Assembly: GCA_025594325.1 (NCBI GenBank)
Contig: JANHCV010000008.1
Span: forward strand, 1,302,001-1,366,000
Source of the DNA: Blastocladiella emersonii ATCC 22665
Lineage: Eukaryota > Fungi > Blastocladiomycota
Length of the DNA: 64,000 nucleotides
Direction of reading: 5' to 3'
This document shows, in pieces, positions 1 to 64,000 of the stretch (within the stretch, counting starts at the first letter, position 1; every line of letters starts with the position of its first letter). Both the position numbers and the translations under genes were made by a program. Under the pieces are notes generated by a model that saw nothing but the letters and a program-made list of their open reading frames with translations, made no database searches and was not told the DNA's origin.

Positions 1-303
1 ACGGGCCGGATCGACTGTCACATAAATTCCAGGCGAAAACTGACCATTCGGGAACATAATCGTATTCGATTGGCTGACAGTAAAGCCGGGATGGCCCATC
101 GCGACAAGCCCCGCAGACGTCGGCAGCGGCTGACTTTGCAAAGTTGCCCGATCTGTCACTTGAATGCGCCACGACAAACCCGCGCGAATGTGCTGCAGCA
201 TCGCATTGAGGGAGTTCAGCAAGAGCGGCTCCGTGTAACTCTGGTCCACTGCCGCGCCTTCGGGGATGACAGAGTACACCATGAGGCCGAGAGTATGTTG
301 CAT
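1..303 (-). CDS. Gag-like family gene, 5' part (runs off window start)
   Basis: Manual translation from ATG 303 is open to base 1: MQHTLGLMVYSVIPEGAAVDQSYTEPLLLNSLNAMLQHIRAGLSWRIQ. This matches the N-terminal helix of other copies (e.g. LLLNSMNQRLCSIRAALKQRL at 34.5 kb). Island start motif GATGTAACTCTATGCAAC at 314-297. Confidence 0.65.
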   Translation of the reverse strand, partial: MQHTLGLMVYSVIPEGAAVDQSYTEPLLLNSLNAMLQHIRAGLSWRIQVTDRATLQSQPLPTSAGLVAMGHPGFTVSQSNTIMFPNGQFSPGIYVTVDPAR

Positions 304-491
304 AGAGTTACATCAACGTCCATTCCCCAGCATAACCGACGGGAGCAGAAAACTTGCGTTGCGTGCGGCGAGCGCGTCAAAGTCGCGCCAACTGGCGGTC
401 ACCTGACGCGTTGCCCCCCGCGTTTCCCTTCGTGAGCGCGATTTGTTCGCCCTCTCACTCCCCGCCTCCCTCACAAGCTCATGCAAAACAA

Positions 492-1443
492 ATGGATACC
501 CGAACAGACTTGCCGCAACGGTCTCACGGGCTCGACGCCCTCCCCGAGTTCCTGCTTGCTGCGATTCTCCGATTCGCGAGGCCGCGACGTGTCGTTTGCA
601 CGACGGCTTCCGCGCTTCTCAATGCTGCCCGCGATTTGCCCACACAATCGGCGTGGATGGCCCGGTACTTACGCTCCAGATTGCCAATTCAGATCGTGCA
701 ACGGTATTCATTCAATTTTCGGATCATTGGTACCGACCTCGGTGCCTACTTTGAGCGGCGCTTTATCGCCTCCACAATAAAAACACCGCCCAAAACCGTC
801 GGTAATCCAGCCCTCGACGAGCCACTGTTCTTCGCTTCCGCGTTCAAATGGCTTGCACAGCGGACTCGCCGCGTTCTGTTCCGCCCAGGTGAAGCTGTTG
901 CTTCGCTTGGCTCGGCCCTTTTGCAAATCCGAGACATTCAAACGATGCTCCGGCCGCCATTTACTTCGACCAAACGGCACCGCGGCCACTTGTGAGTGCT
1001 GCGATCTTGCAACTCAAATCGCGTGGTTTTCCGCGATCGAATCTATTGTTCAGCTTCAGTCCTGTACCCGGTGGACGCAGCTACTGCCTTCGCTTTTCAA
1101 ATCCGTCGTTGCAACTTTCTCGAAACCCGGCGGACTGGCTTCACACACTGGGTACGAGAACACAAGCACATGCGCTTTCGCGGAGCGGTACCCGCTGCTC
1201 CGCCTGCTCGCGATGCTCGTTGCCGCGGGCGTTGATGGTTTCTTCCCCTTTGACGAGAGCAAGCGTCGCAGGGTTCCGTTAGACGTCTGGCAGCTGGTCC
1301 CGAACGGCGCGCTCGACCGCACTCGCGATCTTGATTGGGTCCGCGCGACCAAGCGCGTCGTGTCGGGCAACCAGGCTGTCCTCTTGGAGCTTCGCCGGTG
1401 CGCACCCGTGCTCATGTCTCAGCTGGAGCAGCCGGGCGAGTGA
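492..1443 (+). pseudogene. F-box-like N-terminus protein, split over two frames (frameshift or unresolved intron)
   Basis: ATG 492, LDALPEFLLAAILRFA resembles an F-box start. Frame ends at 995 next to a GTGAGT donor-like site, and a coding-like frame continues to 1443. I could not find a phase-consistent acceptor. Confidence 0.4.
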
Positions 1444-1686
1444 GTATGTGTTTCTGTGTTTTCGCGACATATTATTTCATCTGCATGCATAGCGGCTGGC
1501 GCAAACGCTTCGCTTCCCGGCACTGTAAGAGTGACAAGCGAACGCGATGGTCACCTCCGCGTGACATTTCCGTCAGCGCTGTCGGCTGTGGCGTAGCGTC
1601 CGCCGATCGGCCGTCGACGCTAAGATGAATCCCTCACTCAGAGCAAAGCGCCCCACCACCCGCGCTGCTATGTAACTTGAAGCATT

Positions 1687-3270
1687 ATGGACAGCGCATC
1701 ATATGAAACTCATAGGCCTATTGAGCGCCGCGTGGAGACGCTATTTACATCGCTCCACCTGAGAGCGCAGTTGACCCGTGAATCGCGAGCCGTGATGCCC
1801 TGTTCTTGCGCCTCAGTCTGCTCCCTGGTGAGCAGCTAGCGAGGCTTCAAGCTCGCATGATTGATACGACCAAGGTTTTGAGCGACGCCGACGAAACGGG
1901 CGCTGTAGCACAAGCAGAGCTTGCAGCTGTCTCGCGTGAGTCGGTGCCAGTGCCCGTTCCCATAGTCGAGCGGGATCGCACTTCAACCCCCTCGTCCCAA
2001 CATCTTTCCAGGCCGACATCGGTGCCCAGTCCGACGTACTCGGAAGGTGTGCCACCTAAACAGCTTCATAACTCAACGGAGCCGGACTTCGCCGCCCTGA
2101 TGGAGCGGGACGCGCCATATTTCTGCTCCCGACGGCGCGATATCCCACCCGAGAAGGATCTCCGTAGGCCGGCACACTTTCTCAAACAGCTTCGTTCCGT
2201 GGCACCACACGCAAGCCTGGTCTCTCTTATCCTCGCTGCGCGCACTCTCATCCCGACAAGCGTGTATGCCGTGTGCTGCGCGACGCTTTCCGTGTCAATG
2301 AACGACCAGGAAGCGGCCAACGCATTCTGCCGCGCAGCCAATCCCCGTTCGAACGGGCCGTGGGTCGGCATATGGCTATAGCTGGCTCCATGGTCGCGCA
2401 GCGAGATTCGCGAGTTTTACAACTTGTTCCGCTTGCGACCCGGCGAGGTGGTTCATGTTACGCCCGAATTCGTGCGGGAGCAGCATATCAAGCTCACGTT
2501 TGTTGGGATGATTGAGAGCAAGTTCGGGCCAGTGTGTGGTTCTATCCGCCAGATTATCGATGACGACAACGGGTCTCTTGTCGGCATTGTTGCCAAATAC
2601 GATCGATTGGCGAGGTCGGAGCGATCTTCAACCAACGGCGTTTAGGCGAGGTCCCCAAGGCTTCCCTCGATTGCAGCCCCAGTAGCGTTTCTTTCTCGCT
2701 CTCGCTCTCGCTCGCGCTGGGATTCGTAGTTTTGAACTTGGTCAAACTCGCTGTATCGCTCACGTTCACAAACCCCATCTCGCGCGACGACGCACCATCG
2801 AGATCATTGACGGAAACGCTCTTATTCTCGCTCACCTCCCGCTCACGCCCGCGATCCCGCCGTCACTTGCCAGCTCCGCGGCGGTGCGATACTTTGCCAG
2901 GCCGCCGGTTCCACAATTGCTCGCGCTCGCCCGCCCATCGCGATCCTTAGAGCAAGACGGCGGACTGCGTGCTGTACAGCGACCCTGACGTGGATCTCAT
3001 CCAACGCTTGCACGCGGCGCCTCACAGCACCGAGGCCTGCCCACTCTTGGATCAGCCTCGTTCGCTTGCGCGAGAGCTCGTGTTCACGCTTGCTCGATCT
3101 CGGATTTCCAGTCCCACCGCCACCTCACGCCAAGCGCTTGCGGGGGTGACGGAAGAATGGCTCAAGCGGATCCGCGGATCCCGCGCGGGACACAACCCAA
3201 GACCGCGCGCAGCTTGAAGTGGTGTCGAGGGATGCTCGGGACGCTGCTCCAGCTGATCCCACGGAGCTCT
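1687..3270 (+). pseudogene. Gag-like subfamily A pseudogene
   Basis: Homology to 14644/32091 throughout (LHLRAQL; APYF..FLKQLRSVAPHASLVSLILAAR; VTPEFVREQHIKLTF; HSTEACPLLDQPR; LKWCRGML). Frameshift near 1800, in-frame TAGs at 2379 and 2643, knuckle Cys to Tyr. Confidence 0.8.
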
Positions 3271-3276
3271 CATCGC

Positions 3277-3702: not shown

Positions 3703-4716
3703 TCAGTGTGAAGGAGGGCGAGAGGATGCGCGAACAACGTCGTTGACAAGCGCGGTAAATGAAGTAATCTTGGGCCAGCTATTTTTGAACACTGCGAAGG
3801 CCTTGGCGTTGATGCCGATATCCGCGCAACAGGGACCGAGCATGCCGAGATAGAGCCCCTTGAGATGAGCTGAGCGGTCGATCTCGTGCAGCGAAATGGC
3901 GCGCCCAACGAACGTCATGAAGCGTTCAGTGAAGCGTTCAACCGATTCGCCCTTGGTCCGCGAGAGAGCACACCAGTCGTCGAGCCACGCGGGTCGACGC
4001 TGCGGGTCAAATGCATCGAGAAATACGCGGCGAGCACAATCGTCGGACATATCTGACCGCAAGAGGATCGCGTACGAGCGATACAGCGGGATATTCACCA
4101 CGCTGCGCGCAAGGAGGAGCCCTCGCGCAAGATGGCCGGGCGGGCATTCTGATGCCAGGTTGTCAATAAACTGGAGCAAGTTGTTGCGAAGGTCGGGTGA
4201 ATCGAGTGCGGGGCCTTGCGGAGTGAAGGTGGGGGCTGGCGCGCAACGAAGGATGCGGTGACGAAGCTGGGTGTTGGAGATACTCTTGACGACACCAATA
4301 TTGGGTGCTGCTTGGGGAAGCGGCGGCTGGCTTGCAGGCGCCGGATCATCTAGCGACGAATGTAGCGTTGAACTTGGCGAGTGAGGGTGAGTGCCGATGC
4401 GTGTGGGAGGGCAGGTGTCGCCCACGTAGTCAGAAGGGATTGGGGCATGAGACAGGGTCTGTTCCCGAGGCCCAATACTTGGCGAGAAAGCAATCGGATT
4501 GCGGTCGGGTGATGCGTTCTTGGATGCAATAACTCGGCAATCCGGTTGCGTGGAAGCATCGTGGTCTGGAACAAATAGCTCGGTTTGAAGCCGCTGGGAC
4601 ATAATTGCGTGAAAGCACTGCAGTCGGGCGCTCATGGACGCCAGCAGGGCCGACCCGTCCAATGTGGACTCCGCTGGCTCGCCTCCGACCCGAACCAAGT
4701 GCGAAAATGAATCCAT
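3703..4716 (-). CDS. Gag-like subfamily C, capsid-like domain only (no knuckle or C-terminal domain)
   Basis: 337 aa ORF. FLDAFDPQRRPAWLDDWCALSRTKGESVERFTERF resembles the Ty3/retrotransposon Gag capsid motif (L.Q..ESV..Y..RF). Ends before the zinc knuckle seen in paralogs. Confidence 0.7.
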   Translation of the reverse strand: MDSFSHLVRVGGEPAESTLDGSALLASMSARLQCFHAIMSQRLQTELFVPDHDASTQPDCRVIASKNASPDRNPIAFSPSIGPREQTLSHAPIPSDYVGDTCPPTRIGTHPHSPSSTLHSSLDDPAPASQPPLPQAAPNIGVVKSISNTQLRHRILRCAPAPTFTPQGPALDSPDLRNNLLQFIDNLASECPPGHLARGLLLARSVVNIPLYRSYAILLRSDMSDDCARRVFLDAFDPQRRPAWLDDWCALSRTKGESVERFTERFMTFVGRAISLHEIDRSAHLKGLYLGMLGPCCADIGINAKAFAVFKNSWPKITSFTALVNDVVRASSRPPSH

Positions 4717-5089
4717 AGAACGTGTTGCATAGAGTTAAACATTGGTCTGGCGAGAAGGGTACACTTCGGGTGAGACAGAACCGCGCGGAGGGTCCCGCGG
4801 CGCGCGAGACAGCGCAGACAACTGTGGCGCTCACGCGGCCGATCACATGATAGCTCGACGCGTCTCGCACGTTTTCGAGTTGCTGAGCGCGCCCTTCGAC
4901 GTTGCTCACAGCTTAGGGCGGGCCTTCAAGGGCATTGCGAGAGGTGCCAATTCGCTTCGTGAGGAATGCGTGTACGAGTGCCGCTGCGCCAGGGTAACGG
5001 TCATCGCCTCGAAATGCAGCTTCGGCTTCGTGATCAATCAAGACTCTCCGAGAACACAAAACATATCGTATATTCATGAACACCCGCCC

Positions 5090-6793: not shown

Positions 6794-7212
6794 GGTGTCG
6801 TTGCATGTGGTTCGTGTGTCTCGTGGAGTCGAGAGCGACCGGCCCGGGGAAGTCGCGAAGACGCTCGAGCCGGAGGTCGAGCCGGGATCGCGTGATCACG
6901 GCGTGATATCGCGACGCGTATTCGCTCGCAGTCGAGCATGGCGGCCGATCAGCTCACGTCGCAAACCAGCATTAATTAGCTGGGAGGGCACGTGCGGGTG
7001 GATGCAGCGGGGCGACAAGCGGTCGCGCAAGCGGGACCGAGAGGAAGGCTGGGAAAGAGCGCGTCGCTGTTGATCATGAGATGCAACAGAAGAAGAAGCA
7101 GGTAGACCTCGTGGCTTTCGGTGCTCGCCGGGATGCACGCGACTAGAAGCGGCGGTTTGAGTAGGTACGCTCGATTCGGCCGAGGTCCGCTCGCGGTTAG
7201 GCCTCGGAGCAG

Positions 7213-7844
7213 TTGGTATCAAGCTCGATGATGAAGTTTCCGAAAAAGTACCAGTTTTGTTGGCTTCTCAACCAAGTGGTCCATGTCACACCAGCTCTCT
7301 TGTACCAGCGGCACATGAAGCACGTTTTCAATATCCGCGTGTTCCAGGATATCCGCTGGAGCCCATGGACTGTGCGGAAAATGATCGTCGACTCGCAAAT
7401 TTCTTTCACCGACATGGTCAGAGAGTACGTGGAGCTTGGCAGTGTTCGCGCCATTTCGAGCGACTATGGCCCTGACTCCGTCCAGGATTCTCCTCGCCGG
7501 TCGAGTTCTCGTTCGCCTCCACTGCCGCGCTCGGACTTTCAGTATCAACCTCTGGAGCGTCCTCCGGGCCACTTGCAGGGAGATTTGGTTGCTCGATTCT
7601 CAGTATCGCCTTGTGCAACAGCAACTTCCGCCCGCTCAGGCACGAAGCGTCCTATCGCAGCGCTCGCCCCGTGCAGCTTCTGCGTTCAATACGGTTCCGA
7701 GTCCGCACCCGAGCACTCGAGCAACCGTGCTCCAGCTGCTTGCCCGAACTTGCACCAGTCGGCTCTACATGCTAAGCTTCTTGTCACGACATCGCGCAAG
7801 CTTGATATCGACATTCTGCCGTCTTCAACTCCTCCCCATGAACC
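7213..7844 (+). pseudogene. Gag-like subfamily B, 5'-truncated, interrupted by transposon (part 1)
   Basis: QFCWLLNQVVHVTPALL..HMKHVFNIRVFQDIRWSP and CSFCVQYGSESAPEHSSNRAPAACPNLHQ closely match 16590-18188. Homology stops at 7844. Confidence 0.85.
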
Positions 7845-7876
7845 CATCGCCGAAACGGTCCTGGCGACGCGAGGGC

Positions 7877-8000
7877 TGACGCCAGCAGGGGTTAGAACCC
7901 TTGACGCCAGACCCCTGACGCCAGGTCGGCGGCGGTCCCAGCCAAACTCGCGTCGGGGCTGGCGTCAGCCTCGGCCGGACCTGACCCAGGTCTGACGCGA
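7877..8000. repeat. Left subterminal repeats (TGACGCCAG/CTGGCGTCA)
   Basis: Copies at 7877, 7902, 7916 (direct), 7959 (inverted), variant TGACGCGA at 7993. Confidence 0.85.
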
Positions 8001-11692: not shown

Positions 11693-11821
11693 CTGGCGTC
11701 ACGGCTGACGCGACGATTTCTGCGTGGTCTGACGCCAGACCTGATGAAAATCATTTTGACCCTGGCGTCAGCCGTCGCGTCGCGACCCACGCGTCGGACC
11801 TGACGTCAGGCGTGACGCCAG
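11693..11821. repeat. Right subterminal repeats
   Basis: CTGGCGTCA at 11693 and 11762, TGACGCCAG at 11730 and 11813, TGACGTCAG at 11801. Confidence 0.85.
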
Positions 11822-11852
11822 GCCCCTCAAGCTGGGAGCCGTTTCGGCGATG

Positions 11853-12073
11853 CCCAAGAGTGACACCGAAATCGAGCAGGCCGTGGCCCAGTGGCTCAAA
11901 CAGCTCGGGTTCGCCAATACCGCGCAAGTGGGCGGCACTGAATCCGCAGGTCGTGTCAAGAAGTTGCGCGGCGTCCTGGGCACGCTGCTGTGGCTCCCGG
12001 CCTCGGCCCGTGTGCCTGCGCTGCGGAAGCTGTGGAATGCTGTTGTCGAAGCGTTTTCGTTGTCATCCGAAAA
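11853..12073 (+). pseudogene. Gag-like subfamily B, part 2 (3' end after transposon)
   Basis: KSDTEIEQAVAQWLKQLG...KKLRGVLGTLLWLPASARVPALRKLWNAVVEAFSLSSE is nearly identical to the C-terminus of 16590-18188. The paralogous TAA is AAA here. Confidence 0.85.
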
Positions 12074-12221
12074 AAGTCGTGCCCTATCTTCGGCGCGAAG
12101 GTCACCTGAACGTGGCGCACCCGCCACAGCTGTCGGCGGTCGGTCAGCCACGCCAACGCGGCGAGCGGCGCCACGAGTCCTCGCTCGCACCCCTTCTCGA
12201 CCGTAAACGCATCACCCACCC

Positions 12222-13850
12222 ATGAAGCTCAATGTAACCTCATGCAACGTGAATGAAAACACTATGCAAACTGAGAACCTGGCTCAGCGCCGCGCCGCGA
12301 CGCTCATGACCGCCTTCGACCTGCGGGCGCAGCTCGTTCGAGATGCCGTCACCTTGCGCTGCAGCCCACCTGCCGAAGCGCAGGATTTTGATAATCTGAA
12401 ATCGTACACTCTTGTTACATCCAAAGCGCTATTCGAGGTCGAGGAGACGGGCGCACTGCTTGAAGCCCAGCTAGCTGCATTGCTACATGACCGACCACGC
12501 TCACCAAAGCCAGCTTACCAACCCCAACCCGATATTCCGCCCTCACAATTGCCTATGCCAGCTCTTTCCGCCGACTTGGACCTCGTCGCATTGGTGGATC
12601 GGAAGGCGCCGCACTTTCGCGCCAGCAACTCGGATGTCCCGAACAGCCGAAACTACCGCTCAGCATCCCGCTACATCCCCATGCTGCAAGCGGTGGCCCC
12701 GTGCACGAATCCTGCGGCGCTGCTCCTCGCGGCGCGCTCGCGCGTCCCGCAGAACATCTACACGGTCTACTCGGCCCTCCTGCGGCCATCCATGTCCAAC
12801 GACGAAGCGAAGAGCGCGTTTCGCCGCGCGGCCGATCCCTCGTGGAGTAGCGGCTGGGTTAGCGCCTGGCTTGAGTTATCACCTCGGTCGCAGTACGACA
12901 TCGGCGCCTTTTGTCACGAATTCCGCGGTCTGCTCAGCGAGGTAGTTGAAGTGACGCCTGAACTCAAGCGAGAGCGTCATATCAAGATGCTGTTCGTCGA
13001 GCGGATCGGGCGCAGCTTTGGACCAGCTCCATGGTCTGTCCGGCGACGTGTAGAAGATAAAAACCAGTCGCTTGCCGATATCGTGTCCGAATACGAACGG
13101 AATGCGCGCTTCAAGGAAAGCGCTCCGCGGACGAGGTCCAAATCGCCTCCAGATGGCAGAAACCGCGTCCGGTCGCGTTCGCGCTCGCCACTTACATCTT
13201 CAAATCTTAGCGGATCGCGCAGACGCTTTCTTTCATCGTCACGGTCTAGATCGCGATCTCGGTCACGGTTGCGGTCACCCTCGCGCTCGCGCTCGCCGCC
13301 GCCACGGCGCCCATCGTCACGGTCCAGATTGCACTCTCAGTCGTAGTTGTGTTCGCTGCAAACCCGGCCCCCGCCCCGTCCGCGGGATTCAGCCTCGTTA
13401 CCATCGCATCTGGCACAGCGGCGACTGCTTAACCACTGTGCCGGTCTCTTCAACCGCATGGAAAAATGTGTGCTTTGCAGCGATCCAACCTTTCCCAACG
13501 TTCGCATATCACAGGCCTCTCACCACACTGAAGCCTGTCCCCTCCTCGACCGGCCCCGCGTGCTCGCATGTTCGTTCCTGGCTTCTCGCGATACGTTCCA
13601 TATTTTGAATCCCGTTTCACCGCCGTCTCTCGATCCCCGCGACCTGGTCAACGTTACAACCAAGTGGGTGCTCCGGTTCCGCGAGGTTCGGATCCCGCCT
13701 GGAACCCATATCTCAGTTGTGCGCGAGCTGGAGTGGTGCCGCGTAATGCTCAAGGCAATGCTCTGACTCTCACCATTGCGGCCGACAGAGGTGCTGCGCG
13801 CCATGTGGGAAGAAGTGTTGAAGTTGGCCGCGGAGAAAATGATCGCAACG
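12222..13850 (+). pseudogene. Gag-like subfamily A with two in-frame stops
   Basis: ORF 12222-13346 (helix, capsid-like, RS tract), TAG, then in-frame 13347-13766 with CVLC-x14-H-x4-C PLLDRPRVLA, TGA, then VLRAMWEEV. Confidence 0.8.
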
Positions 13851-14390: not shown

Positions 14391-14395
14391 AAACG

Positions 14396-14494
14396 TTGCG
14401 CGGCGTCCTGGGCGCGCTGCTGTGACTACGTGTGCCTGCGCTCCGGAATCTGTGGGATTCTGTTGTGGATGAGATTCCGTCGTCATCCGAGTAA
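14396..14494 (+). pseudogene. 3' fragment of a subfamily B Gag-like gene
   Basis: LRGVLGALL*LRVPALRNLWDSVVDEIPSSSE* followed by a spacer similar to 12080-12220 and 18190-18340. Confidence 0.75.
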
Positions 14495-14643
14495 CGCCTT
14501 GTTTCCCTCGTTCGCGGAGGTCACTTGAGCATGACACGCCTGCCACAGCGTTCGGTGGTTGCTCAGCCACACTGTTACGGTGAACTGCGCCACGAGCCGG
14601 CTCACGTCTCGCCCGCTCACGACCACAAAGGCGTCACCTGCCC

Positions 14644-50800: not shown

Positions 50801-50902
50801 CCGCCGCCGCACGTGCACCGCGTCGTGGTGGTGGTCGGCGGGCTCGTGGTGCATGCGCTCGCGATGGCGGGGATTTATGTGCAGATGGTGCGCGGTGCGT
50901 GA
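47808..50902 (+). CDS. IKS1: IKS1-family Ser/Thr protein kinase (4 exons)
   Basis: Introns 48209-48262, 48677-48732 and 48940-49005 join in frame. QLVLYN, CPLC..F, YF.LL, QGYYDRFFVELKKLGRGAHGSVFLCQHVLDDIPLG-YAIKKVAVG, HRDLKPPN, DFGE. Confidence 0.85.
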
Positions 50903-50977: not shown

Positions 50978-52414
50978 TCATTCAACAACCTCCGCCGCGC
51001 CCAAAAAATCCGTCGCCGGGCCAGGCAAATCGCGCATCCCGGCCGCCGCGAACCGCGGCGTGACCCTGGCGAACCCGTCGGCCGCGACGTACACCTTGAC
51101 CGCGCACACGGGCGACGGGACCCGCGTCGCGTCGATGCACGCGCCGGGCACGCCGTTGCGCGAGAACGTGACGCGGCCGTCGATGCTCACCATGATGCCG
51201 CACACGTCGCCCTCGCGGAACGGTTGCGGGAGGTACGCGGCGCGCGATACGCCGCGCACCTCCTCGCTACTGACAAACACGCGGCCGTCCCACAGGTCGA
51301 GCGCGAGGGACCAGTCGTGCCGCCCCGGACGCCGGAACGACGGGTACGGCGGCGTCGCGAGGCCGAGCGTCACGCGCGTGGTGGCCGAAAGCCGGGTCAG
51401 CTCGAACTCGATGTACACCGGCCGCAGCGTGCGGGAGTGCAGCGGGACCGGGTGGTTCGTCACGACGTTGACGACGGGGTCCGGCGACGTGCGGGGGACG
51501 TAGTTCTCGCGGGCCGGGTCGCGGCGTGGGTAAAACGTCACGGCGCGCGTCGTGAGATCGAACTTGGCGACCTTGGCGACCTCGCGCTGCGGCGCCACGA
51601 GCTCCCACCCGCGCGCCGAGCGCATCGACGCGACGGCCGCGGTGTCGAGCGTCAGGCGCACGCCCGCGTTTGCGGCGCAGAAGGCGTCGGCGCGCGCGGC
51701 GTCGTCCTCGGGGCTGCTGCTGGATGACGCGGCGGCAGCGGCAGGTGGTTCGTCGTCGATGGCGACGGCCGAGTACGACGGCGGCGGCGGAAGGAGCCCG
51801 TCGTCGTCGTCGTCGTTCGTGGGAACGAGTTGCGGCGCAGCCGGCTTCGACGGCGGCGCCGCGGCCGGCACGAACTCCCGCGCGGGCCCGCGCACAAACC
51901 CGCTGACGCCCAGCGTCCCCGCGCGTTCCGCCGCGCGCCGCCGCTCCCCGTCGCGGCGGTCGGCCTCGCGCTCGAGCCACGCCATCCGCCGCCGCTTCGC
52001 TGCGTCGCGCACGCGGACGTAGCACCACCACTCCCGGACCCCGGCGCGGTGGAAGGCGCAGGCGGCGAGCATGGCGAGACAGAACAGACCAAAGAACGAG
52101 CCGCCGATGATCTCGACCCAGCGCCAGACGAGGTCGGCGCACCACGACGCCCACCGGGAGCGGTCGGCCTTCATGTCGGCGGTCAGGAAGACGCACCCGT
52201 CCTCGCCGTGCGGGCCGCTGCCGGACTCGTAGTAGTAGCCGCTGCCGCTGAAGGAGGCTACGGGGGAGGGGAGGGGGTGAGTGGGGGCGGGTGAGAGAGG
52301 GGAGGGTGGGGCGGGCGTACAGTACGCCATGACCGCGGGCGGGGCCACGACGAGAACCGCGGCGAGGACGGCGGCGAGGGATGCCGGCGTTGCGGCGGTG
52401 GCCGTAGATTTCAT
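50978..52414 (-). CDS. SSH4: SSH4/EAR1-like TM + SPRY Rsp5 adaptor, copy 1
   Basis: Signal-like N-terminus, TM helix, PPPPSY motif, GLATPPYPSFRRPG..GDVCG..FSRNG SPRY core; probable in-frame 63-nt intron 52320-52258. Confidence 0.7.
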   Translation of the reverse strand: MKSTATAATPASLAAVLAAVLVVAPPAVMAYCTPAPPSPLSPAPTHPLPSPVASFSGSGYYYESGSGPHGEDGCVFLTADMKADRSRWASWCADLVWRWVEIIGGSFFGLFCLAMLAACAFHRAGVREWWCYVRVRDAAKRRRMAWLEREADRRDGERRRAAERAGTLGVSGFVRGPAREFVPAAAPPSKPAAPQLVPTNDDDDDGLLPPPPSYSAVAIDDEPPAAAAASSSSSPEDDAARADAFCAANAGVRLTLDTAAVASMRSARGWELVAPQREVAKVAKFDLTTRAVTFYPRRDPARENYVPRTSPDPVVNVVTNHPVPLHSRTLRPVYIEFELTRLSATTRVTLGLATPPYPSFRRPGRHDWSLALDLWDGRVFVSSEEVRGVSRAAYLPQPFREGDVCGIMVSIDGRVTFSRNGVPGACIDATRVPSPVCAVKVYVAADGFARVTPRFAAAGMRDLPGPATDFLGAAEVVE

Positions 52415-53133: not shown

Positions 53134-53493
53134 TTACTTGAGCCTCGGCCGGATCCCGCAGAACAGGGCGATCACGATGAGGCAAAAAAGGCCGAGCACG
53201 CAGCCGGCGACGATCTCGACCCACCGCCACACGCGGTCTGCGCACCACGCCTTCCACCGCGTGCGATCGGCCTTCATGTCGGCCGTGAGGAACACACAGC
53301 CGTCCTCGCCGCTCGGTCCGCTGCCGGACTCGTAGTAGTAGCCGCTACCCGTGAACGAGCCGCCTGTGGGGTCGGCAAGTGAGTAGGAGAGCGGGAGGAG
53401 TGGGTCTTGACGCGTACTGTACGCCATGGCTTCCGAGGAAGCGGCGAGGATTGCGACGAGGATGGCGATGGCCGTCGCGGTGTTTGAGTTCAT
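53134..53493 (-). pseudogene. SSH4-like copy 3, truncated after the TM helix
   Basis: GSGYYYESGSGPSGEDGCVFLTADMKADR..WRWVEIVAG is near-identical to copies 1 and 2; no SPRY domain. Confidence 0.8.
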
Positions 53494-54162
53494 CGTGCTT
53501 GATTTCAAGTCTGTATGGTCCGAGCGAGAGAAAGTTCCGAGCGCAGCGCGACGCTGAAGTGCCGGCCAGGCAAGCGAGCCGCACCATTGTACGGGAAGCG
53601 AGGGCGCCCAGGGACCCAGCCTGATCTGGAGTGAGGGACCCTTGCCGCTAGCCGAGCCGCGGGGCGCTCGCCGCGGGGATCGAGCGCGCGTGCCGTACCG
53701 CAATGCGCGGGAGGGTGAGTCCGCGCTCTGTTCCTCCCGCAACGACGAGAACGCGCCGCCGTGGCGTTCAAGGGAGTACAGGGGTATGGGCTGCCTCCTG
53801 GTTGCTCGGAAGGTCGAGTCGCTCGCTCACTTTGGCGCGGATTCGGTCGAGCGTGGGGACGCGCTGCGCCACACGAGCGGTGTGACAGGTCGGCGTTGCC
53901 TCTTCGCATCGTCGGCCGCGTTCCGATCCCTCAGCTGAACGAAACGCTGCGACAGAAAGCAAAGGAACTGATCTTGCACTCGACTTTCGAGTTGGAACCT
54001 AAGATCTGCTTTTGTTTTGGCGGTGAGAGGTGCGCTCGACGCTCATCGCCACTTGCACGTTCTTCTGCCCAAACGACTTGCGAACCTGAGCCCCGCTAAC
54101 TTGGCCAGCGAATGCCCACGATGAAGCCGAATACGCTTGTACAGCAACATGATACATCTATT

Positions 54163-55603
54163 TTACACGACCGCGTTCCGGAAATCCGTCGCCTCGGCCG
54201 GGAGATACTCCATCTCCTCCCCCTTGAACCGCGGCGTAACGACCGCAAACCCGTCGGCCGCGATACACGGGACGACGCAGAACCTCGGACTCGGGACCGT
54301 CGTCGCCGTGATCTTGGCCCCAAACACGCCGTTGCGCGAGAACCCCACACACCCATCCGTCCCAACCATCACCCCGACCACGTCGCCCGCGACGCACGGG
54401 ACCGCGTACGGCGCGTGCGCCGAGTTCCCGCTCGCCGTCCCGATCCGCACGCGGCCGTCCCACAGGTCGAGCGCGACGGACCAGTCGTGGCGCCCGGGCC
54501 GCCGGAACGACGGGTGCGGCAGCGTCACGAGCCCGACCGACACGAACACGGCACCGCCGAACCGGTCGACCTTGAACTCGGCGTACAAGGGCCGCGGCGT
54601 GCGGTCGAACAAGGGCACGGGGAGGTTGGTCACGACGTTGACCGAGGCGTGCGGGCGCGGGCCGTACGGCTCGCCCGCCGTGGAGGGCGGGCGGTCCGGG
54701 TTCAGCTGCGGGTAGAAGGTCACGACGCCCGAGGTGCCGTGGATCTTGACGACCTTGGCCACGTCGCGCTGCGGCGCCGTGAACGACCAGCCGGCGGCGG
54801 ACCGCATCGCCTTGGCTGTCGCCGCGTCCATGGTCAGCGGCACGCACGCGTTCACGGCGTAGAAGTCCTGCGCGAGCTGCGTGTCGTCGTCGGCGGGCGG
54901 CGCGGTATCCGAGGAAGCCGCGGCGATGGGCGCGTCGGCGACCGAGTACGTCGGCGGCGGCGACGCGGCTCCGTCGCTGCTGCTGCCGAGATCGAGCTGC
55001 GGCTGGCTCGTGAACGCCGGCGGCGCGCCCGCTCTCGACGCCGCCTCGGCCGCGGGCGCAGCGCCCGTCACCGTCGGCACGAGCGCGGGCACGAACGCGT
55101 CGGGCCCGAGCGACTCGCCCGCGCGCGTCGGCATCCGCTGCTGCTGCTCCTCGACGGCGTTCGCGACCACCTGCGCCTCGCGCTGCCACTGCCTGCGCTT
55201 CCGCCGCTTCTGCACGCCGTCCCACCACGCGCAGCAGCTGATGTCAAAGTGGTCGAGGACCATGATGACGAGCAGGACGAAGCAGACGACGCCGAGCAGG
55301 GTGCCGCCGATGATCTCGACCCACCGCCACACGCGGTCGGCGCACCAGGAGTGCCACCGCGACCGGTCGGCCTTCATGTCGGCGGTCAGGAGGATGCACC
55401 CGTCTTCGCCGTTCGGCCCGCTGCCGGACTCGTAGTAGTAGCCGCTACCCGTGAACGCGCCGCCTACAGGGTGGCGTGTGAGATGCGGAGGGTGGGAGGA
55501 GTGGGTGGTGATGCATGCTGTACGCCATGACGGCGGGCGTCGTTGCGAAAACCGCTGCGAGGACGCCTGATGCGGCGACAGCCGCCGCCGTAGTAGTTTT
55601 CAT
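54163..55603 (-). CDS. SSH4: SSH4-like TM + SPRY adaptor, copy 2 (~461 aa)
   Basis: Exon 1 55603-55519, 55-nt GC-AG intron 55518-55464 at the position of the GT-AG intron in paralogs, exon 2 to 54163; PPPTY motif and SPRY core. Confidence 0.7.
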
Positions 55604-56752: not shown

Positions 56753-57010
56753 CCCCCCATCAAGGCCGCTACGCTCCACCCGCGTGCGCCACATCTACCA
56801 CGAAGACCATAGAAACTTTCCCCGTAAGCGGATCTCCGTCCATGCATACGTCCGCGACTGCCCGGCCCGGGGCGCGGCGGTCACCCGCACGCGGCATCAC
56901 GTGAGATGCACCCTGAAACGGCGATCGTTCGCCCGCCCTCGCTCGAGCCGAGAAGCGGCCCCGTGCGCCCCTTGCTCCCTCCGGCCCCTGAACCACACAC
57001 AGTTTTTGCC

Positions 57011-57454
57011 ATGGGATTCAACGCACAGAAGGTCGCCAACCGCAAGCGCACTAAGCGCAACGCGCCCACCAAGCCCGAGGCTACGGCTGAGCCCGTCGCC
57101 GCGGCGCCCAAGCCGGCGCTGTCGGTCCGCGAGGTGGTCGCGCGCCGCCGCGCCGCCCGCACCACCGAGGCCGCCAAGAACGGCGACCCCGCCGCGCTCC
57201 AGGCTATGCTCGCGCAGATCCAGGCCATGATGGCCAAGGGCCAGCCCGGCCGCGACGCCGCGGACGGCGAGGTTGACGCGGACGAGGACGCGGCGGCTGC
57301 CGAGCTCGACGCGATGCTCCTCAACGATATCGAGGCCGGCGAGGCGAAGCTTGCCATGGACAAGGTCCAGATCGAGAAGCTTGACCGTCTCGTCAAGGGC
57401 GAGGCTGACGAGGCCCAGGTCGCTGCCGAGGAGGGTACCGTCGCTGCCGAGTAA
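57011..57454 (+). CDS. Small basic/Ala-rich/acidic helical protein (147 aa)
   Basis: MGFNAQKVANRKRTKRNAPTKP; strongly biased codons; paralog at 59161. Confidence 0.7.
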   Translation: MGFNAQKVANRKRTKRNAPTKPEATAEPVAAAPKPALSVREVVARRRAARTTEAAKNGDPAALQAMLAQIQAMMAKGQPGRDAADGEVDADEDAAAAELDAMLLNDIEAGEAKLAMDKVQIEKLDRLVKGEADEAQVAAEEGTVAAE

Positions 57455-58841: not shown

Positions 58842-60377
58842 TCAATCCTCACGAACACACCCTGTATGACGCATGGAATATGCTCCCACCGAGTCTTGAG
58901 CCGCGAGAGAGCACATAGCGTGCAAGAAGCGGATCCGTGCATGATAGCGTGCATTTGACGTTCGTCCGTGCCGCCTCACGGCGCGACTCGCGGACTCAGC
59001 TTCGCCCCATCGCTCAAACAACATGCAGCTCTGGCTTCGCGAACTCTTAGGACCGTGCGCGTCGCTCACTGGCACGCCGACCCACGTGGCGGCCCAAGCA
59101 GGTTGAAACATCGACGAATCGCGCCACGCCGCTCTCTCTCCCCACACCTCACACTTTGCCATGGGATTCAACGCACAGAAAGTCGCCAACCGCAAACGCA
59201 CTAAGCGCAACGCGGTCACCAAGCCCGCCGCCGAGACGTCGCCCGTCGCGAGCGACAAGCCGGCCGCCGCTGCCATGTCGGCCCGCGAGGCCCTCGCCCG
59301 CCGCCGCGCCGCCGCGGCAACGGCCTCGACCGTGGCCCCCGGCATGACCGACATGCTGCAGAGCCTCCAGGACATGCTCGCGCAGGCGCACGCGACGCGC
59401 GACCCGAACGAGTCGGCCAAGGACAAGGCTGCCGGCGACGCTATGCTCGCGGAACTCGCGGCCAACATTGCGAAGGGGCAGGAGTACGTCGACCAGGCTA
59501 AGCGCGTCGAGCGGGCGGGGCGCGAGGCGGCAACGGGAGGCTCAGCCACGGACGCGTGGTGCGGGATTGTGAGAGTGGAGAAGCGCGCCGCCATGTCCGC
59601 CACGGTCAGGTTCGCGTCGCTGACCAGGTCGTGGAGCGAGTCCGAGGCGCGGCCCAGCGGCTCGTACAGCTTGTTGGAGAAGACGTGTTTGACCTGCCGC
59701 TCGCTCCCGATCGCGCGGTCGTCGATATCGATCACCTCGGCCAGCAGCGCGCGGTACTCGACAAAGAACTCGCCCACGGCACTCCCTGGCCGTGGTACGA
59801 GCGCGTGGAACCGGGCGACCCACTCGCGGTTCCAGTTCGGGTCGGCCGCATTCAAGAATACGCGCCGGGCCTCGGTCTCCAACGCCGTCTCGCGCAGAAA
59901 GATGGCGTACACGCTGTACAGCGGCTTTGGGACGTTGAACCGCGATAGGTACAGTGCCTGGGTGAGCGGAATCTTGGGGACCAGTCGTTGCAACGATTCG
60001 AGGAAATCCACTGGATTGCGCGCGACCGACATCCGTCGCGGCCCACTAATCCAGAGCAGCGGCGCCCGCTCCCGGATCAGCTGGAAGCAGCCCGTATCGT
60101 ATGAGCGGCGGAACGTGCCAGCGGGCTGCCGCGAGGCGCGCAGCGGGCCGGGGATGTGCGCCGCCGGTCGAGGAGAAACGTGGGCGAGGACTGTGTCCCG
60201 CTGAACCAACATGCGCTGTTGCTCGATCGAGTGGTAAAGCACGCCGAGCTCGTGAAGCACGGCCTCAAGCTCGGCCAGATTGGACGGTACCGGGTCGGGC
60301 GTAGGCGGGCGCTGCAAGCGAGCCGCAACCAGCAGCCGAATGCACTCGAGCCGAAGATCCATGGAGAGTCGCGTCAC
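58842..60377 (-). CDS. Gag-like subfamily D, truncated after the capsid-like domain; ORF runs on antisense to the 59161 gene
   Basis: RRSYDTGCFQLIRERAPLL..EARRVFLNAADPNWNREWVARFHAL..GSERQVKHVF matches 61511. Homology is lost near 59520. Confidence 0.7.
   Translation of the reverse strand: MTRLSMDLRLECIRLLVAARLQRPPTPDPVPSNLAELEAVLHELGVLYHSIEQQRMLVQRDTVLAHVSPRPAAHIPGPLRASRQPAGTFRRSYDTGCFQLIRERAPLLWISGPRRMSVARNPVDFLESLQRLVPKIPLTQALYLSRFNVPKPLYSVYAIFLRETALETEARRVFLNAADPNWNREWVARFHALVPRPGSAVGEFFVEYRALLAEVIDIDDRAIGSERQVKHVFSNKLYEPLGRASDSLHDLVSDANLTVADMAARFSTLTIPHHASVAEPPVAASRPARSTRLAWSTYSCPFAMLAASSASIASPAALSLADSFGSRVACACASMSWRLCSMSVMPGATVEAVAAAARRRARASRADMAAAAGLSLATGDVSAAGLVTALRLVRLRLATFCALNPMAKCEVWGERAAWRDSSMFQPAWAATWVGVPVSDAHGPKSSRSQSCMLFERWGEAESASRAVRRHGRTSNARYHARIRFLHAMCSLAAQDSVGAYSMRHTGCVRED
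59161..60204 (+). CDS. MGFNAQK-family protein whose 3' end is replaced by antisense Gag-like sequence
   Basis: First ~120 aa are paralogous to 57011. From ~59520 the frame reads the reverse complement of the subfamily D gene. Confidence 0.55.
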   Translation: MGFNAQKVANRKRTKRNAVTKPAAETSPVASDKPAAAAMSAREALARRRAAAATASTVAPGMTDMLQSLQDMLAQAHATRDPNESAKDKAAGDAMLAELAANIAKGQEYVDQAKRVERAGREAATGGSATDAWCGIVRVEKRAAMSATVRFASLTRSWSESEARPSGSYSLLEKTCLTCRSLPIARSSISITSASSARYSTKNSPTALPGRGTSAWNRATHSRFQFGSAAFKNTRRASVSNAVSRRKMAYTLYSGFGTLNRDRYSAWVSGILGTSRCNDSRKSTGLRATDIRRGPLIQSSGARSRISWKQPVSYERRNVPAGCREARSGPGMCAAGRGETWARTVSR

Positions 60378-60981
60378 GGCTTCGTGCAGGCGTAAGAGCT
60401 CAGTTTCGCTGGGCGGGAACGCGTTGGTAGCCGCGCAGAAGGAACTTAAATAGCCTATCAGGTCCGTTGCATGGAGTCTGTGGAGTGTTCATTGCGAGGG
60501 GAGTGGTATGCATGGTGTCGAAGTGGAGCGAGGATCGGCCGACGCGTAACGCTAAAGTGACGACCCGCGCCGCCGCGTCCGCCGCGATATAAGAACCGTG
60601 AGCCCTTGAAGCACAGTCGGGTATTAGCCATCGATAACAGCTTGCAAGCTAACCGGAGAGACGACAGGCGCCAGTTGCCCTTGAAGCGACAATCACTGGA
60701 GCTCCGCTGTTACAAGGCCTGCGTATGGCGAACTGGGCGTCATTTCAAGACTTCAGTCTCTACACACCGATGCACCCAGGTAGTGCAAGACGCGGATCGA
60801 CCCAAAGTGCTCCCGCCGAGACGAACGGACGGACCGCGCCGACGCGTCGTTCATGTCACGCGACTGCGCGCACGTGGCTGGCCGATCGCGCACCCGCTCA
60901 TGACGCGACTCGCTGCGCAGCCCTTTCGCTCCTCCGCGAACCGGCCACGCGCAACGTAACTATCATCCTGCAACCGACACC

Positions 60982-61510: not shown

Positions 61511-63013
61511 TCAGCTCACCCACTCGCGTCTGACCGACACCGCGTGCCCTTCGAGCCAGATTTCTTGCACCAAGTTGAGCGCCCATGCCTCCGCCTTGAT
61601 TGGGAGCTCAAGCAGCGCCGCAACGACTTCGGGGCACTGGTCCACCTTGTCCCTGTCCCTTCCCCTCGGCAGATGGGCCCGGCTGCCCCTTGCGTTCCTG
61701 TACAGCCGGTCCATGAATCGCACCAGGTCGCTCGCGCTGCACTTGGCAGTCCAGACGTCGCGTGGGACCTCGACTCGCGCCAGATAGACCCCCTCGCCGA
61801 GCATCGTTCCAATGAGGCGCGTGCGCTGCAGCTTGCGGCATTCTTCGACCGCGTGCGTCCCAGCGCCGTGCTCGTGGTTCCGAATCGCGCGACAGAACGC
61901 GCATGGCTCCTTGCGGCCGGTTCGGCCCACGACTGGAGCCGTCGGTTTGGTACGTGCGCGTGAAGTGATTATGAGCGACGAGAAGCTGGCGGCCAAGTGC
62001 GCGAGGGTCTTGGACGGGTCGCCGATCATGTCGTAGAGCGGGTCGGACTCCCTGCTGGGCGTGTCGTAAATTTTATGAGTGAAAACGTGTTTGACTTGCC
62101 GCTCCGAGCCGATGACCGGGTCGTCGATATCAATCACCTCGGCCACGAGAGCGCGGAACTTGAGATAATAATCACCCACGGTGCTGCCGGGTCGCGGCTC
62201 GAGGGCGTGGAACCGCGCGACCCACTCGCGGTTCCAGTCCGGATCCGCCGCGTTCATGAACACGCGCCGCGCCTCCACATCGGTCGCGGTCTCGCGCAAA
62301 TAGATCGAGAAGACGTGGTACAGCGGTTTCGGTACGTTGAACCGCGACAAGTAAAGCGCTTGGCACAGCGGGATTTCGGGCGTGAGCGCCTGTAGCATTT
62401 TGAGGTACTCGGCCGCGTCGCGTGCTACGCGCATCCGCTTCGGACCGCGAATCCCAAGCAGCGGCGCTCGTTCGCGGATGACGTCAAAGTAGCCCGAGTC
62501 GTAGGAACGGCGGTGCGTGCCTAGCATGTGCGCAGGGACCGGTGTTGGGGCAAGTTCCGGCTGAGTCGAGTTTGCTGGTATGGTCCGAGTCAAGTCGTGT
62601 GCACGGCGCTGTGCTGTATCGCTGCACTCCTCGATAGAACGCCGGAGATTTTCCAGCTCACAAATGACGGCCGCAAGCTCGGTCAACCGCGACGAAGCAA
62701 GCTCGGATGAGCATCGTTGAAGGTGTAGCGTAAGCGATAGGTTGATGTGCTTGAGACGCAGTTCCATGGTCTGGCGGACCACGGCTTCAAGCAACTGGAC
62801 CAAACCTGCCTCGTCGGACGGCAACTCGCGCAAGGCGACGAATCGAGCAAGTGCGGGCGGCAAGTGGACGCCGTCGCGCGACAGAAAGGTAAATAGCCTT
62901 GAAGTTCCGTTGCATGGAGTACATGGCGATTTCATGGTCGTGGGAGTGGTGTTAAGGCCTCGAGGGGGAGAGAGAGGAGGCGCTCGGGACGGTGGCGAAA
63001 TGGGCTGCGCCAC
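61511..63013 (-). CDS. Gag-like protein, subfamily D (intact; start 63013 or 62935)
   Basis: MELRLKHINLSL helix; EARRVFMNAADPDWNREWVARFHALEPRPGSTVGDYYLKFRAL; CAFC-x12-H-x4-C; helical C-terminus ending LVQEIW. Confidence 0.75.
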   Translation of the reverse strand: MAQPISPPSRAPPLSPPRGLNTTPTTMKSPCTPCNGTSRLFTFLSRDGVHLPPALARFVALRELPSDEAGLVQLLEAVVRQTMELRLKHINLSLTLHLQRCSSELASSRLTELAAVICELENLRRSIEECSDTAQRRAHDLTRTIPANSTQPELAPTPVPAHMLGTHRRSYDSGYFDVIRERAPLLGIRGPKRMRVARDAAEYLKMLQALTPEIPLCQALYLSRFNVPKPLYHVFSIYLRETATDVEARRVFMNAADPDWNREWVARFHALEPRPGSTVGDYYLKFRALVAEVIDIDDPVIGSERQVKHVFTHKIYDTPSRESDPLYDMIGDPSKTLAHLAASFSSLIITSRARTKPTAPVVGRTGRKEPCAFCRAIRNHEHGAGTHAVEECRKLQRTRLIGTMLGEGVYLARVEVPRDVWTAKCSASDLVRFMDRLYRNARGSRAHLPRGRDRDKVDQCPEVVAALLELPIKAEAWALNLVQEIWLEGHAVSVRREWVS

Positions 63014-63198
63014 ACGACAAGAACGTGCGCCGAGGCATCACATGATTGTTTGACGCGTCTCACACGAGCAGTTCATCAATGCGGTCTGCCCTTTGCTATT
63101 CTCGCTCACTGTCTTCGCTTGCCTTCTACCCAACTGCTTCGCAACGTCGCGTCCGCACCCTGATGCCGCACCTCGGACGAAAACGCTCGCTGAACCGA

Positions 63199-63366
63199 TC
63201 AACGACAAGGCTGCCATATAAGAAGCGCGAGGAGTTCTGTCTCACAGTCTGGCCGCTTTCGTGAGACAGCGAATAGGCTGAGAGCTGGCGCCAGACCGTC
63301 TCCGTTGAACATGAGAAGTGTAAATAGCTCCATGGGTCTGTTGAATGGAGTGCAGGGCGATTTCAT
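63199..63366 (-). pseudogene. 5' fragment of subfamily D gene
   Basis: MKSPCTPFNRPMELFTLLMFNGDGLAPALSLF matches MKSPCTPCNGTSRLFTFLSRDGVHLPPALARF. Confidence 0.65.
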
Positions 63367-63534
63367 AGCGACAGGATTGGCCTCACACCACCAAAAAGAG
63401 TCGAGAGTCCCCGAGCTCGGGTCGCTCATAGTTTGTCACATGATTCCTCGGCGCGTCAGCTCCGTTCGGCTGACCCCATCGAACGTGGCACTTCTCGCAG
63501 GCGTGATACTGCGATGAAGTCTATTTCAGCCCGC

Positions 63535-64000
63535 CTACACATCGAACAGCAGACCGCGCTTGGTCAGTACCGCCCTTGCCTCGTGCCAGACATCCAGCAC
63601 TGACTTGAGCGCCCACGCCTCTTCCTCCTTCAGCACGACAAGCAACGCGCCAAGTATTTCGGTGCACTGCTCGACCTTGAGCCTGTCGTTATTCGTCGAC
63701 AGACGGCGCCAGCACGCGCCGACGTTGTCGCGCAAGCGATTGATACTGTGAATCAGCTCCTTGGCCGTGCAATTGGCCGGCAACACGGTACACGCGCTCT
63801 CGGCACGCGCAACTTGGATCCCCTCGGCAAGCATCTTACCATAATTTTGGACGCGCTGATGCAGCTTTTTGCACTCGTGGGATGTGTGCGTCGCGGCCCC
63901 GTGCGCGTCGTGCTTGATGGATCGGCAGAAGGAACACCGATCCTTGCCACTGACGTTCTTGTGCAGGGCGCGCGATGTGTCTGCGGTCGGAAGTGGCGCC
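63535..64000 (-). CDS. Gag-like subfamily D, 3' part (gene begins beyond window end)
   Basis: Manual translation: KDRCSFCRSIKHDAHGAATHTSHECKKL..GKMLAEG..KVEQCTEILGALL..EAWALKSVLDVW, paralogous to 61511. Confidence 0.75.
   Translation of the reverse strand, partial: APLPTADTSRALHKNVSGKDRCSFCRSIKHDAHGAATHTSHECKKLHQRVQNYGKMLAEGIQVARAESACTVLPANCTAKELIHSINRLRDNVGACWRRLSTNNDRLKVEQCTEILGALLVVLKEEEAWALKSVLDVWHEARAVLTKRGLLFDV

Follow-up and report, generated by a model that had tools for sequence, protein, structure and literature searches.

The gene family in the window

The stretch of DNA considered here, called the window throughout, is 64,000 nucleotides (nt) long and lies, in the same orientation, at about 1,302,001-1,366,000 of contig JANHCV010000008.1 of the water mould Blastocladiella emersonii ATCC 22665. 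One protein family occupies about 20 regions of it. Searches with tblastn and with a family profile delimited 19-20 such regions: 8 are intact open reading frames (ORFs), 1 is cut by the window end, and 10-11 are partial or disrupted. The chance that the window holds part of a species-restricted, largely unannotated, stand-alone host gene family derived from gag, devoid of pol and of long terminal repeats (LTRs) and comprising at least ~42 members, is considered to be about even.

The family profile, a profile hidden Markov model used for searching, was built from the 8 intact window ORFs and three relatives from B. emersonii, and it matches each intact ORF with an E value between 1e-135 and 1e-151. 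The eight ORFs, referred to below by their lowest position, are homologous over their whole length, with 18-35% identity to the first sequence of the family alignment. Clustering of core identities at a 35% threshold separates four subfamilies (A-D), and copies are found on both strands. Damage to the broken copies consists of truncation, internal deletion, in-frame stops and frameshifts, and some of them persist as end fragments only. The initial annotation of this DNA had listed eight intact ORFs and about 12 partial or disrupted copies, on both strands and in four subfamilies. All eight were recovered in the ORF list and could be aligned over their whole length, while the further copies and the subfamilies were confirmed by tblastn, the profile scan and core clustering. 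The family is indeed large, pol-less, intronless and highly diverged, as had been stated, and the host is an early-diverging fungus, since a protein from B. emersonii ATCC 22665 matches an ATM1-like ORF in the window (45068-47254, minus strand) with 100% identity.

The domain order is, from the N- to the C-terminus, a conserved N-terminal segment of ~30 residues, a first linker of 81-126 residues, a core, a second linker of 19-115 residues, a Cys/His motif and a C-terminal domain of 82-100 residues. Linker 1 is rich in Ser, Arg and Pro and is disordered. The core is near constant in length across the intact copies (170-181 residues). Arg/Ser (RS)-type runs precede the core in subfamily C and follow it in A and B. 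The Cys/His motif has the form C-x2-C-x12-15-H-x4-C in 8 of 8 intact copies, and no match to Pfam zf-CCHC was obtained in the intact proteins. The shared parts first proposed were an N-terminal helix, a core and a CCHC knuckle. An N-terminal segment, the core and an invariant Cys/His motif are indeed common to the copies, but the motif is not a canonical CCHC knuckle, its spacing being x12-15 instead of x4.

The coordinates of all copies are collected in Table 1, together with those of the other features discussed below. The subfamily D copy at 58845-60488 is overlapped in antisense by an ORF of 347 amino acids (aa), whose first 95 nt share 86% identity with the start of another plus-strand ORF near 57005 (57005-57099; repeat D15).

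Table 1. Copies of the family and other features. Positions refer to the window; those preceded by L002, L004 or L005 refer to other arrays of the same contig.
Feature	Positions	Strand	Details
Disrupted copy, subfamily A	1782-3214	+	Nearest ORF 32091; profile 36-425; one in-frame stop, at least one frameshift; both ends truncated
Open 337-aa ORF, subfamily C	3706-4734	-	3'-truncated; profile 10-313 (N-terminal segment to core); no internal break; lacks Cys/His motif and C-terminal domain
Fragment, subfamily B	7201-7992	+	Second core half to Cys/His motif; repeats D6, D10; 57% identity to ORF 16590; both ends truncated
C-terminal fragment, subfamily B-like	11760-12203	+	Profile scan; repeat D2, 84% nt identity to 3' end of ORF 16590
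Near full-length disrupted copy, subfamily A	12207-13763	+	Profile 1-441; one in-frame stop; extreme C-terminus absent
Short C-terminal fragment, subfamily B-like	14363-14570	+	Just upstream of ORF 14644; tblastn; repeat D9
Intact, 542 aa, subfamily A	14644-16272	+	E 4e-141; C-x2-C-x15-H-x4-C
Intact, 532 aa, subfamily B	16590-18188	+	E 1e-138; C-x2-C-x14-H-x4-C
N-terminal fragment	18345-18707	+	Profile scan; repeat D8
Intact, 561 aa, subfamily B	19450-21135	+	E 3e-150
Linker-1 region fragment	21402-21821	+	Profile 89-189, E 4e-8
Intact, 470 aa, subfamily C	21876-23288	-	E 3e-136
Intact, 494 aa, subfamily C	23588-25072	-	Copy used for structure prediction (profile, AlphaFold2 models, Foldseek); core 24017-24517
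Open copy, ~290 aa, whole core internally deleted	27319-28191	-	N-terminal segment (profile 6-112) plus Cys/His motif and C-terminal domain (316-462) in one open frame
Intact, 469 aa, subfamily A	32091-33500	+	E 1e-141
Disrupted copy, subfamily C	33561-34672	-	Profile 18-318; at least one frameshift; 3'-truncated, lacks Cys/His motif and C-terminal domain
Intact, 482 aa, subfamily C	36689-38137	-	E 2e-151; no gene called in public annotation
Open ORF, subfamily D	58845-60488	-	Family match only from N-terminal segment to core (profile 8-347); 55% identity to ORF 61511; C-terminal third unrelated, lacks Cys/His motif
Intact, 500 aa from GTG start, subfamily D	61511-63013	-	E 2e-135; 61% core identity to B. 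emersonii KAI9175290.1
C-terminal part of a further copy	63538-63999	-	5' part past window end; profile 333-466, E 4e-20
ORF antisense to subfamily D copy	59161-60204	+	347 aa
608-aa family	25234-27060	+	Intact
608-aa family	34799-36622	+	
608-aa family	39431-40541	+	
608-aa family	38603-38821	-	
608-aa family	L004:3171-5054	-	
608-aa family	L004:2-1408	+	
608-aa family	L004:17982-19490	+	
608-aa family	L002:11160-12993	-	
Leucine-rich-repeat ORF	28917-29945	-	
Protein-kinase ORF	30226-31923	-	
86-nt stretch	44033-44118		83% identical to 45170-45255; repeat D18
ABC transporter, ATM1 type (Pfam)	45068-47470	-	800 codons
SPRY-domain gene	50978-52414	-	
SPRY-domain gene	~53137-53826	-	
SPRY-domain gene	54163-55377	-	
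rve-like ORF	L002:850-2016	-	389 aa
Helicase	L002:3714-6914	+	996 aa
Chitin synthase gene	L002:11157-17526	-	
Chitin synthase gene	L005:20744 onward		

Arrays, selection and mobile-element hallmarks

The family is not confined to the window. A phmmer search with ORF 23588 against 1.84 billion cluster representatives returned five proteins, all hypothetical, all from B. emersonii ATCC 22665 and all encoded on the same contig. Around these proteins the profile scan revealed four further arrays of ~21 kb each, with 5, 3, 6 and 9 family regions at ~0.56, 0.19, 1.16 and 0.73 Mb of the contig, respectively. The 23 copies found elsewhere and those of the window bring the family to at least ~42 members within the ~150 kb sampled. 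The six sampled sites are all on JANHCV010000008.1, the one contig that was scanned, which at 1.8 Mb represents 5% of the 34.27-Mb assembly; along it the arrays are scattered between 0.19 and 1.37 Mb, with ordinary genes in between. The whole assembly consists of 21 contigs and carries 10,031 funannotate gene models (PMC9730499). One public protein, KAI9175498.1 (P0001, 556 aa), was considered as a candidate triple-core protein and rejected: it is a 3.5-kb multi-exon model (L004:10001-13458) drawn over three adjacent copies, and its three-core structure is most likely an annotation artefact.

In the public annotation of GCA_025594325.1 no gene is called at 36689-38137, the locus whose annotation was fetched. 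Seven intact window ORFs were looked up in a collection of 15 billion proteins and none is present there; phmmer returned no window paralogue. As the window copies thus appear to be missing from the public annotation, the family is largely invisible to protein-based surveys. A word-indexed protein search with ORF 16590 and with an 11-sequence alignment gave no result and was uninformative, as known B. emersonii paralogues were also missed; Ser/Arg/Pro low-complexity words probably filled its candidate list. In the literature searched, no report was found that links Blastocladiella with gag, retrotransposons or virus-like particles.

The arrangement of the copies records how they arose. In head-to-tail units, the 3′ end of one copy is followed by a conserved ~100-nt spacer and then by the 5′ end of the next copy (repeats D8, D9). 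In a segmental duplicate with a spacing of 9,565 nt, a subfamily C copy has been duplicated together with a second gene (D1, D4, D5, D12). All repeat families in the window consist of two or three paralogous coding regions. The gene family has multiplied locally, through tandem and segmental duplications rather than through transposition, and many copies decay in a birth-and-death process.

Selection was assessed on 28 long open segments from the window and four other loci, which gave 250 comparable pairs. In all 250, the proportion of nonsynonymous differences (pN) is lower than that of synonymous differences (pS). The ratio of nonsynonymous to synonymous divergence (dN/dS) is 0.2-0.43 in those of the 20 closest pairs whose dS is below ~2, and it reaches up to 0.46 in pairs from the window only. 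The initial annotation had noted that many copies stay open, and values of 0.2-0.46, not near 1, agree with selection on them. Even the closest pair shares only 63% protein identity (dS 0.58); no young copies are therefore present, which argues against recent transposition. Of the point changes possible in the intact ORFs, ~3-4% would create a stop, and a neutral divergence of 0.3 per site should have brought 13-17 new stops into each ORF. As the probability of finding none under neutrality is at most 2e-6, the intact copies must be held open by selection. The intact ORFs are maintained by purifying selection acting on a fast-evolving protein.

The initial annotation had noted no protease, reverse transcriptase, integrase or LTR beside any copy, which is borne out by a Pfam scan of the 80 window ORFs of at least 150 aa and by a repeat search of the window. 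Reverse transcriptase, RNase H, integrase, aspartic protease and recombinase are absent from these 80 ORFs, whose only Pfam families are protein kinase, ABC transporter, SPRY and leucine-rich repeat (LRR). Likewise, no reverse transcriptase, RNase H, integrase, protease or recombinase was detected above threshold in the ORFs flanking the four other arrays. In the window, neither LTR-like direct repeats bounding a copy nor inverted repeats were found, and the scans for tRNAs, Rfam families and satellites gave nothing relevant. The spacers between intact copies measure only 160-320 nt and leave no room for LTRs. An ORF that is under purifying selection and lacks pol and LTRs is one of the marks of a domesticated gag gene, and the family shows this combination.

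Close to the L002 array, at 1-6 kb, two ORFs of another kind were observed. An ORF of 389 aa, 6 kb away from the array, has a weak match to the integrase core domain rve (E 1.4e-4, 22.5 bits, below the Pfam cut-off of 32.6), and beside it lies a 996-aa helicase with a match to Herpes_ori_bp (E 4e-16). The pair could represent a piece of a DNA element or of a large virus that has integrated.

Predicted fold of the core and alternative origins

The structure of the core was predicted with AlphaFold2 for ORF 23588, and only open single-frame stretches were admitted to the alignments and to the prediction inputs. The core alone (24017-24517, 167 residues, 14-row alignment) is predicted as ten helices, with a predicted local distance difference test (pLDDT) score of 90.8 and a predicted template modelling (pTM) score of 0.85. 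A longer model of residues 165-494 (19-row alignment) reaches a pLDDT of 84.6; the core and a domain of four helices at the C-terminus are modelled with confidence, and the linker comes out as disordered.

When the core model was compared with 350,542 PDB chains by Foldseek and the best 50 matches were inspected, 32 of the 50 were capsids of retroviruses or retroelements. They include the capsid protein (CA) of bovine leukaemia virus (rank 1), PNMA2 (rank 2), rat Arc (rank 9), HML2/HERV-K, human T-lymphotropic virus 1 (HTLV-1), human immunodeficiency virus 1 (HIV-1), feline immunodeficiency virus (FIV) and murine leukaemia virus (MLV). Isolated CA C-terminal domains align with the core over 78-88 columns, with target-normalised template modelling (TM) scores (TMt) of 0.56-0.61 and root-mean-square deviations (rmsd) of 4.1-4.9 Å. 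The 330-residue multi-domain model gave mixed noise against PDB, plus some capsids of the same classes as the core, and several retroviral Gag, Gag-Pro and Gag-Pol entries were within its 50 best matches in BFVD. A consistent capsid picture came from the core-only model, not from the 330-residue model. On these predicted models, the core suggests a lead toward a two-lobed fold of CA type, short of proven homology.

Several observations weigh against a domesticated gag origin. Gag families, including Retrotrans_gag (PF03732), are absent from the hmmscan of the 8 intact proteins against Pfam-A, even at E ≤10. Profile and single-sequence searches with the family cores matched no capsid chain in PDB and gave chance matches only, to SRSF1 (through the RS stretch), Nanos, designed helical proteins and AP-3 delta. 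The best Foldseek E value of the core against PDB is 0.9, and no single match is significant. Full-length capsids give a TM of only ~0.3 and an rmsd of ~15 Å, as is expected if the two lobes differ in orientation, and TM values of 0.5-0.6 can be reached by chance for small helical domains. The Cys/His motif retains both halves of the retroviral knuckle (C-x2-C-x4-H-x4-C) without its x4 loop, and the helical domain that follows it is atypical for Gag. Because no sequence or profile match exists, no Foldseek E is better than 0.9 and the spacing is not that of a knuckle, the capsid origin is a lead at the level of the fold only. The resemblance to the Ty3/Retrotrans_gag capsid proposed at the outset therefore stands in part: capsids dominate the nearest structural neighbours and CA C-terminal domains align with the core, but neither a Pfam gag match nor a significant Foldseek hit accompanies them.

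Composition and distribution add to this side of the balance. The GC content at third codon positions (GC3) is 0.63-0.80 in the family ORFs against 0.88-0.93 in the nearby ATM1, kinase and SPRY genes, which fits low expression or an element-like sequence. No orthologue outside B. emersonii was returned by the phmmer protein search, in which the window copies themselves lack annotation. A degenerate-pattern scan of JGI metagenomes with subfamily C produced 600 pattern matches, none of which was confirmed as a relative. Look-ups of the exact products in public assemblies, including run assemblies, recovered no intact ORF; the conserved kinase ORF is also absent as an exact string, and such look-ups are limited because differences in start or introns hide even this ORF. 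In addition, a dN/dS below 1 between copies can also be expected for descendants of element lineages that were under selection, a caveat weakened here because pol, young copies and dispersed insertions are all lacking.

Much of this evidence would be accommodated if the copies formed a lineage-specific helical orphan family unrelated to Gag, whose capsid ranking reflected generic small helical bundles and whose Cys/His motif was an unrelated zinc-binding element. The lack of any Pfam gag match at E ≤10 and of any PDB sequence or profile match, Foldseek E values all of 0.9 or worse, the low TM to full-length capsids, the non-canonical spacing and the extra C-terminal domain all fit such a family, as do neighbours that belong to other expanding host families (possibly F-box-like, SPRY, LRR, kinases). 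This explanation is nevertheless held to be unlikely, if far from negligible. The 32 capsids among the 50 best neighbours represent at least nine retroviruses or gag-derived genes and a class that forms a small part of the 350,542 chains, and the same class recurs in two other searches, those of the longer model against PDB and BFVD. Moreover, the succession of an N-terminal segment, a linker, a two-lobed helical core and a basic or Cys-His region is the order of Gag, and it is also the order of these proteins.

Improbable is the origin of the copies as remnants of mobile elements, that is, as gag-only non-autonomous or decayed copies of DIRS-type, LTR or other elements, with pol elsewhere, that were amplified in a composite repeat and whose frames reflect selection on the element lineage. 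The copies are numerous and unannotated wherever looked up, as repeats often are; about half of them are broken or truncated, and their GC3 lies below that of conserved genes. DIRS elements are abundant in Allomyces, another blastoclad (PMC3783388), and the sub-threshold rve-like ORF lies 6 kb from one array. Apart from that ORF, however, no pol or recombinase domain accompanies the copies in the 80 window ORFs or the flanks of four arrays, and terminal repeats, inverted repeats and tRNAs are missing, with spacers of 100-300 nt, too short for LTRs. The arrangement is tandem and segmental instead of dispersed, no pair exceeds 63% protein identity, so that a recent burst did not occur, and the six sampled sites share one contig of a much larger genome.

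Endogenised capsid or nucleoprotein genes of a non-reverse-transcribing virus, later tandemly amplified, are very improbable: despite a precedent in STORM, a totivirus-derived tandem capsid array of Scheffersomyces (PMC13756089), and despite Arg/Ser-rich stretches like those of viral nucleic-acid-binding proteins, with a weak CoV_nucleocap match (Pfam, E 0.069) in 2 of 8 members that is due to the Arg/Ser-rich low-complexity stretch, BFVD gave no consistent non-retroviral structural neighbour while retroviral Gag recurred, and the window holds no viral hallmark genes.

Surrounding genes, possible role and known systems

A second unannotated family, of 608 aa, is interspersed with the capsid-like arrays in the window and in two other arrays, and it has been duplicated along with subfamily C copies in the 9,565-nt segmental duplicate. 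No Pfam domain is detected in it above threshold. Two of its paralogues have N-terminal F-box matches that score 14-15 bits (E 0.02-0.04) and so miss the cut-offs of 20.5 and 24.3, and the window copy at 25234-27060 has none. Its GC3 is 0.68-0.73. A fixed head-to-head module of a subfamily C copy and a member of the 608-aa family was considered and rejected: the two recur together, but in L004 and L002 they are oriented differently, and given the density of copies this adjacency is likely to arise by chance.

Two to three tandem SPRY-domain paralogues with a GC3 of 0.91 adjoin the array. SPRY domains bind capsids in some animal restriction factors. The LRR and protein-kinase ORFs lie on the same strand inside the array region. 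The best match of the ATM1-like ORF is a 728-aa B. emersonii protein (100%), followed by matches in Blastocladiella britannica (66%) and Allomyces (64%). An 86-nt stretch that resembles the 3′ coding part of this gene and lies ~1.1 kb downstream of it suggests a small partial duplicate. Chitin synthase genes flank two other arrays, which may be a coincidence. The conserved genes used for the comparison of GC3 were those at 45068-47254, 48899-50902 and 50978-52414. Overall GC is ~0.58-0.63 in the left 40 kb of the window and 0.65-0.74 in its right part.

If the family is indeed derived from gag, a full-length member would consist of the N-terminal segment, the disordered linker, a ten-helix two-lobed CA-type core of ~170 residues, the Cys/His motif of metal-binding type and the four-helix C-terminal domain. 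Such proteins would be predicted to self-associate through their CA-like lobes, with nucleic acid bound by the Cys/His motif and by the stretches rich in Arg and Ser. More speculatively, their role might lie in genetic conflict, for example in interfering with the capsids of retroelements or viruses, rather than in RNA carriage. A conflict role is suggested by the rapid divergence, the tandem birth and death and the weak codon bias of the family ORFs, which are typical of conflict families, and by its amplification together with a possibly F-box-like family in the neighbourhood of SPRY and LRR genes. It is possible, although tentative, that the 40 or more capsid-derived members on one chromosome, co-duplicated with that second family, constitute a diversifying system built on capsid-type self-assembly, which would supply either decoy or interfering subunits against retroelements and viruses or RNA-packaging proteins.

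If true, an expanded gag-derived system would for the first time be known beyond animals and plants, and for the first time in an early-diverging fungus. It would mean that the domestication of capsids can yield expanding gene families in such fungi, that these families escape current sequence-based annotation pipelines, and that a tractable model organism is at hand for asking what stand-alone capsid proteins do. Should the capsid likeness fail, a large orphan gene family on one contig of a model zoosporic fungus would still have been described.

Stand-alone Gag genes have been domesticated elsewhere, as in Arc, PEG10 and PNMA, and capsid-derived restriction factors include Fv1 and Ty1 p22. 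Co-option of gag is known mainly from animals; it is also documented in plants and in three fungal cases, all single-copy, sequence-recognisable Dikarya genes (PMC8321522), and a kingdom-wide screen of transposable element co-option in fungi left out Blastocladiomycota (PMC10799480). A large tandem pol-less capsid-like family would be the first of its kind in an early-branching fungus, with a capsid likeness that the predicted models suggest and do not prove.

With the Gag of LTR and DIRS retrotransposons, the Blastocladiella proteins share the order of N-terminal segment, linker, CA-like core and Cys/His region and, in the predicted models, the fold neighbours. In contrast to these elements, they lack pol, terminal repeats and young copies, their Cys/His spacing is x12-15 instead of x4, and their genes are arranged in tandem and not dispersed.

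Arc, PNMA2 and the RTL/SIRH genes of animals, which derive from Ty3/metavirus gag, resemble the family in standing alone without pol or LTRs and in being under purifying selection. For Arc and PNMA2 the likeness would extend, on the evidence of the core model and its ranking of these two proteins, to a two-lobed all-helical core. Unlike these genes, the Blastocladiella family has no detectable sequence similarity to Retrotrans_gag and comprises dozens of tandem paralogues, whereas animals carry one or a few loci. Its Cys/His motif is non-canonical, an extra C-terminal helical domain is present, and it is known so far from one species and from genes alone.

Mouse Fv1 and the p22/p18 products of yeast Ty1 (reviewed in PMC13709905) provide an analogy as pol-less gag-derived proteins that could poison incoming or resident capsids by co-assembly. 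The rapid divergence of the Blastocladiella family would fit a comparable conflict role. However, Fv1 and p22 are each a single gene or product whose target element is known, while interference by the Blastocladiella proteins is putative and argued by analogy.

The closest comparisons within fungi are Crtg12-14 and STORM. The former are gag-only genes kept in fungal genomes, as the present family would be, but they are single-copy genes of Dikarya that are conserved across families and whose sequences identify them as gag of Ty1/Copia or Bel-Pao elements (Wang and Han 2021, PMC8321522). The Blastocladiella family is multi-copy, belongs to Blastocladiomycota, cannot be recognised by sequence and is species-restricted within the searches made. 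STORM (PMC13756089) is a fast-evolving tandem array of capsid-derived ORFs in a fungal genome, as the present family would be. It consists of four ORFs from a double-stranded RNA virus, whereas the Blastocladiella family numbers ~20 copies within 64 kb and at least ~42 along the contig, with capsids of retroviral type as the neighbours of its predicted core.

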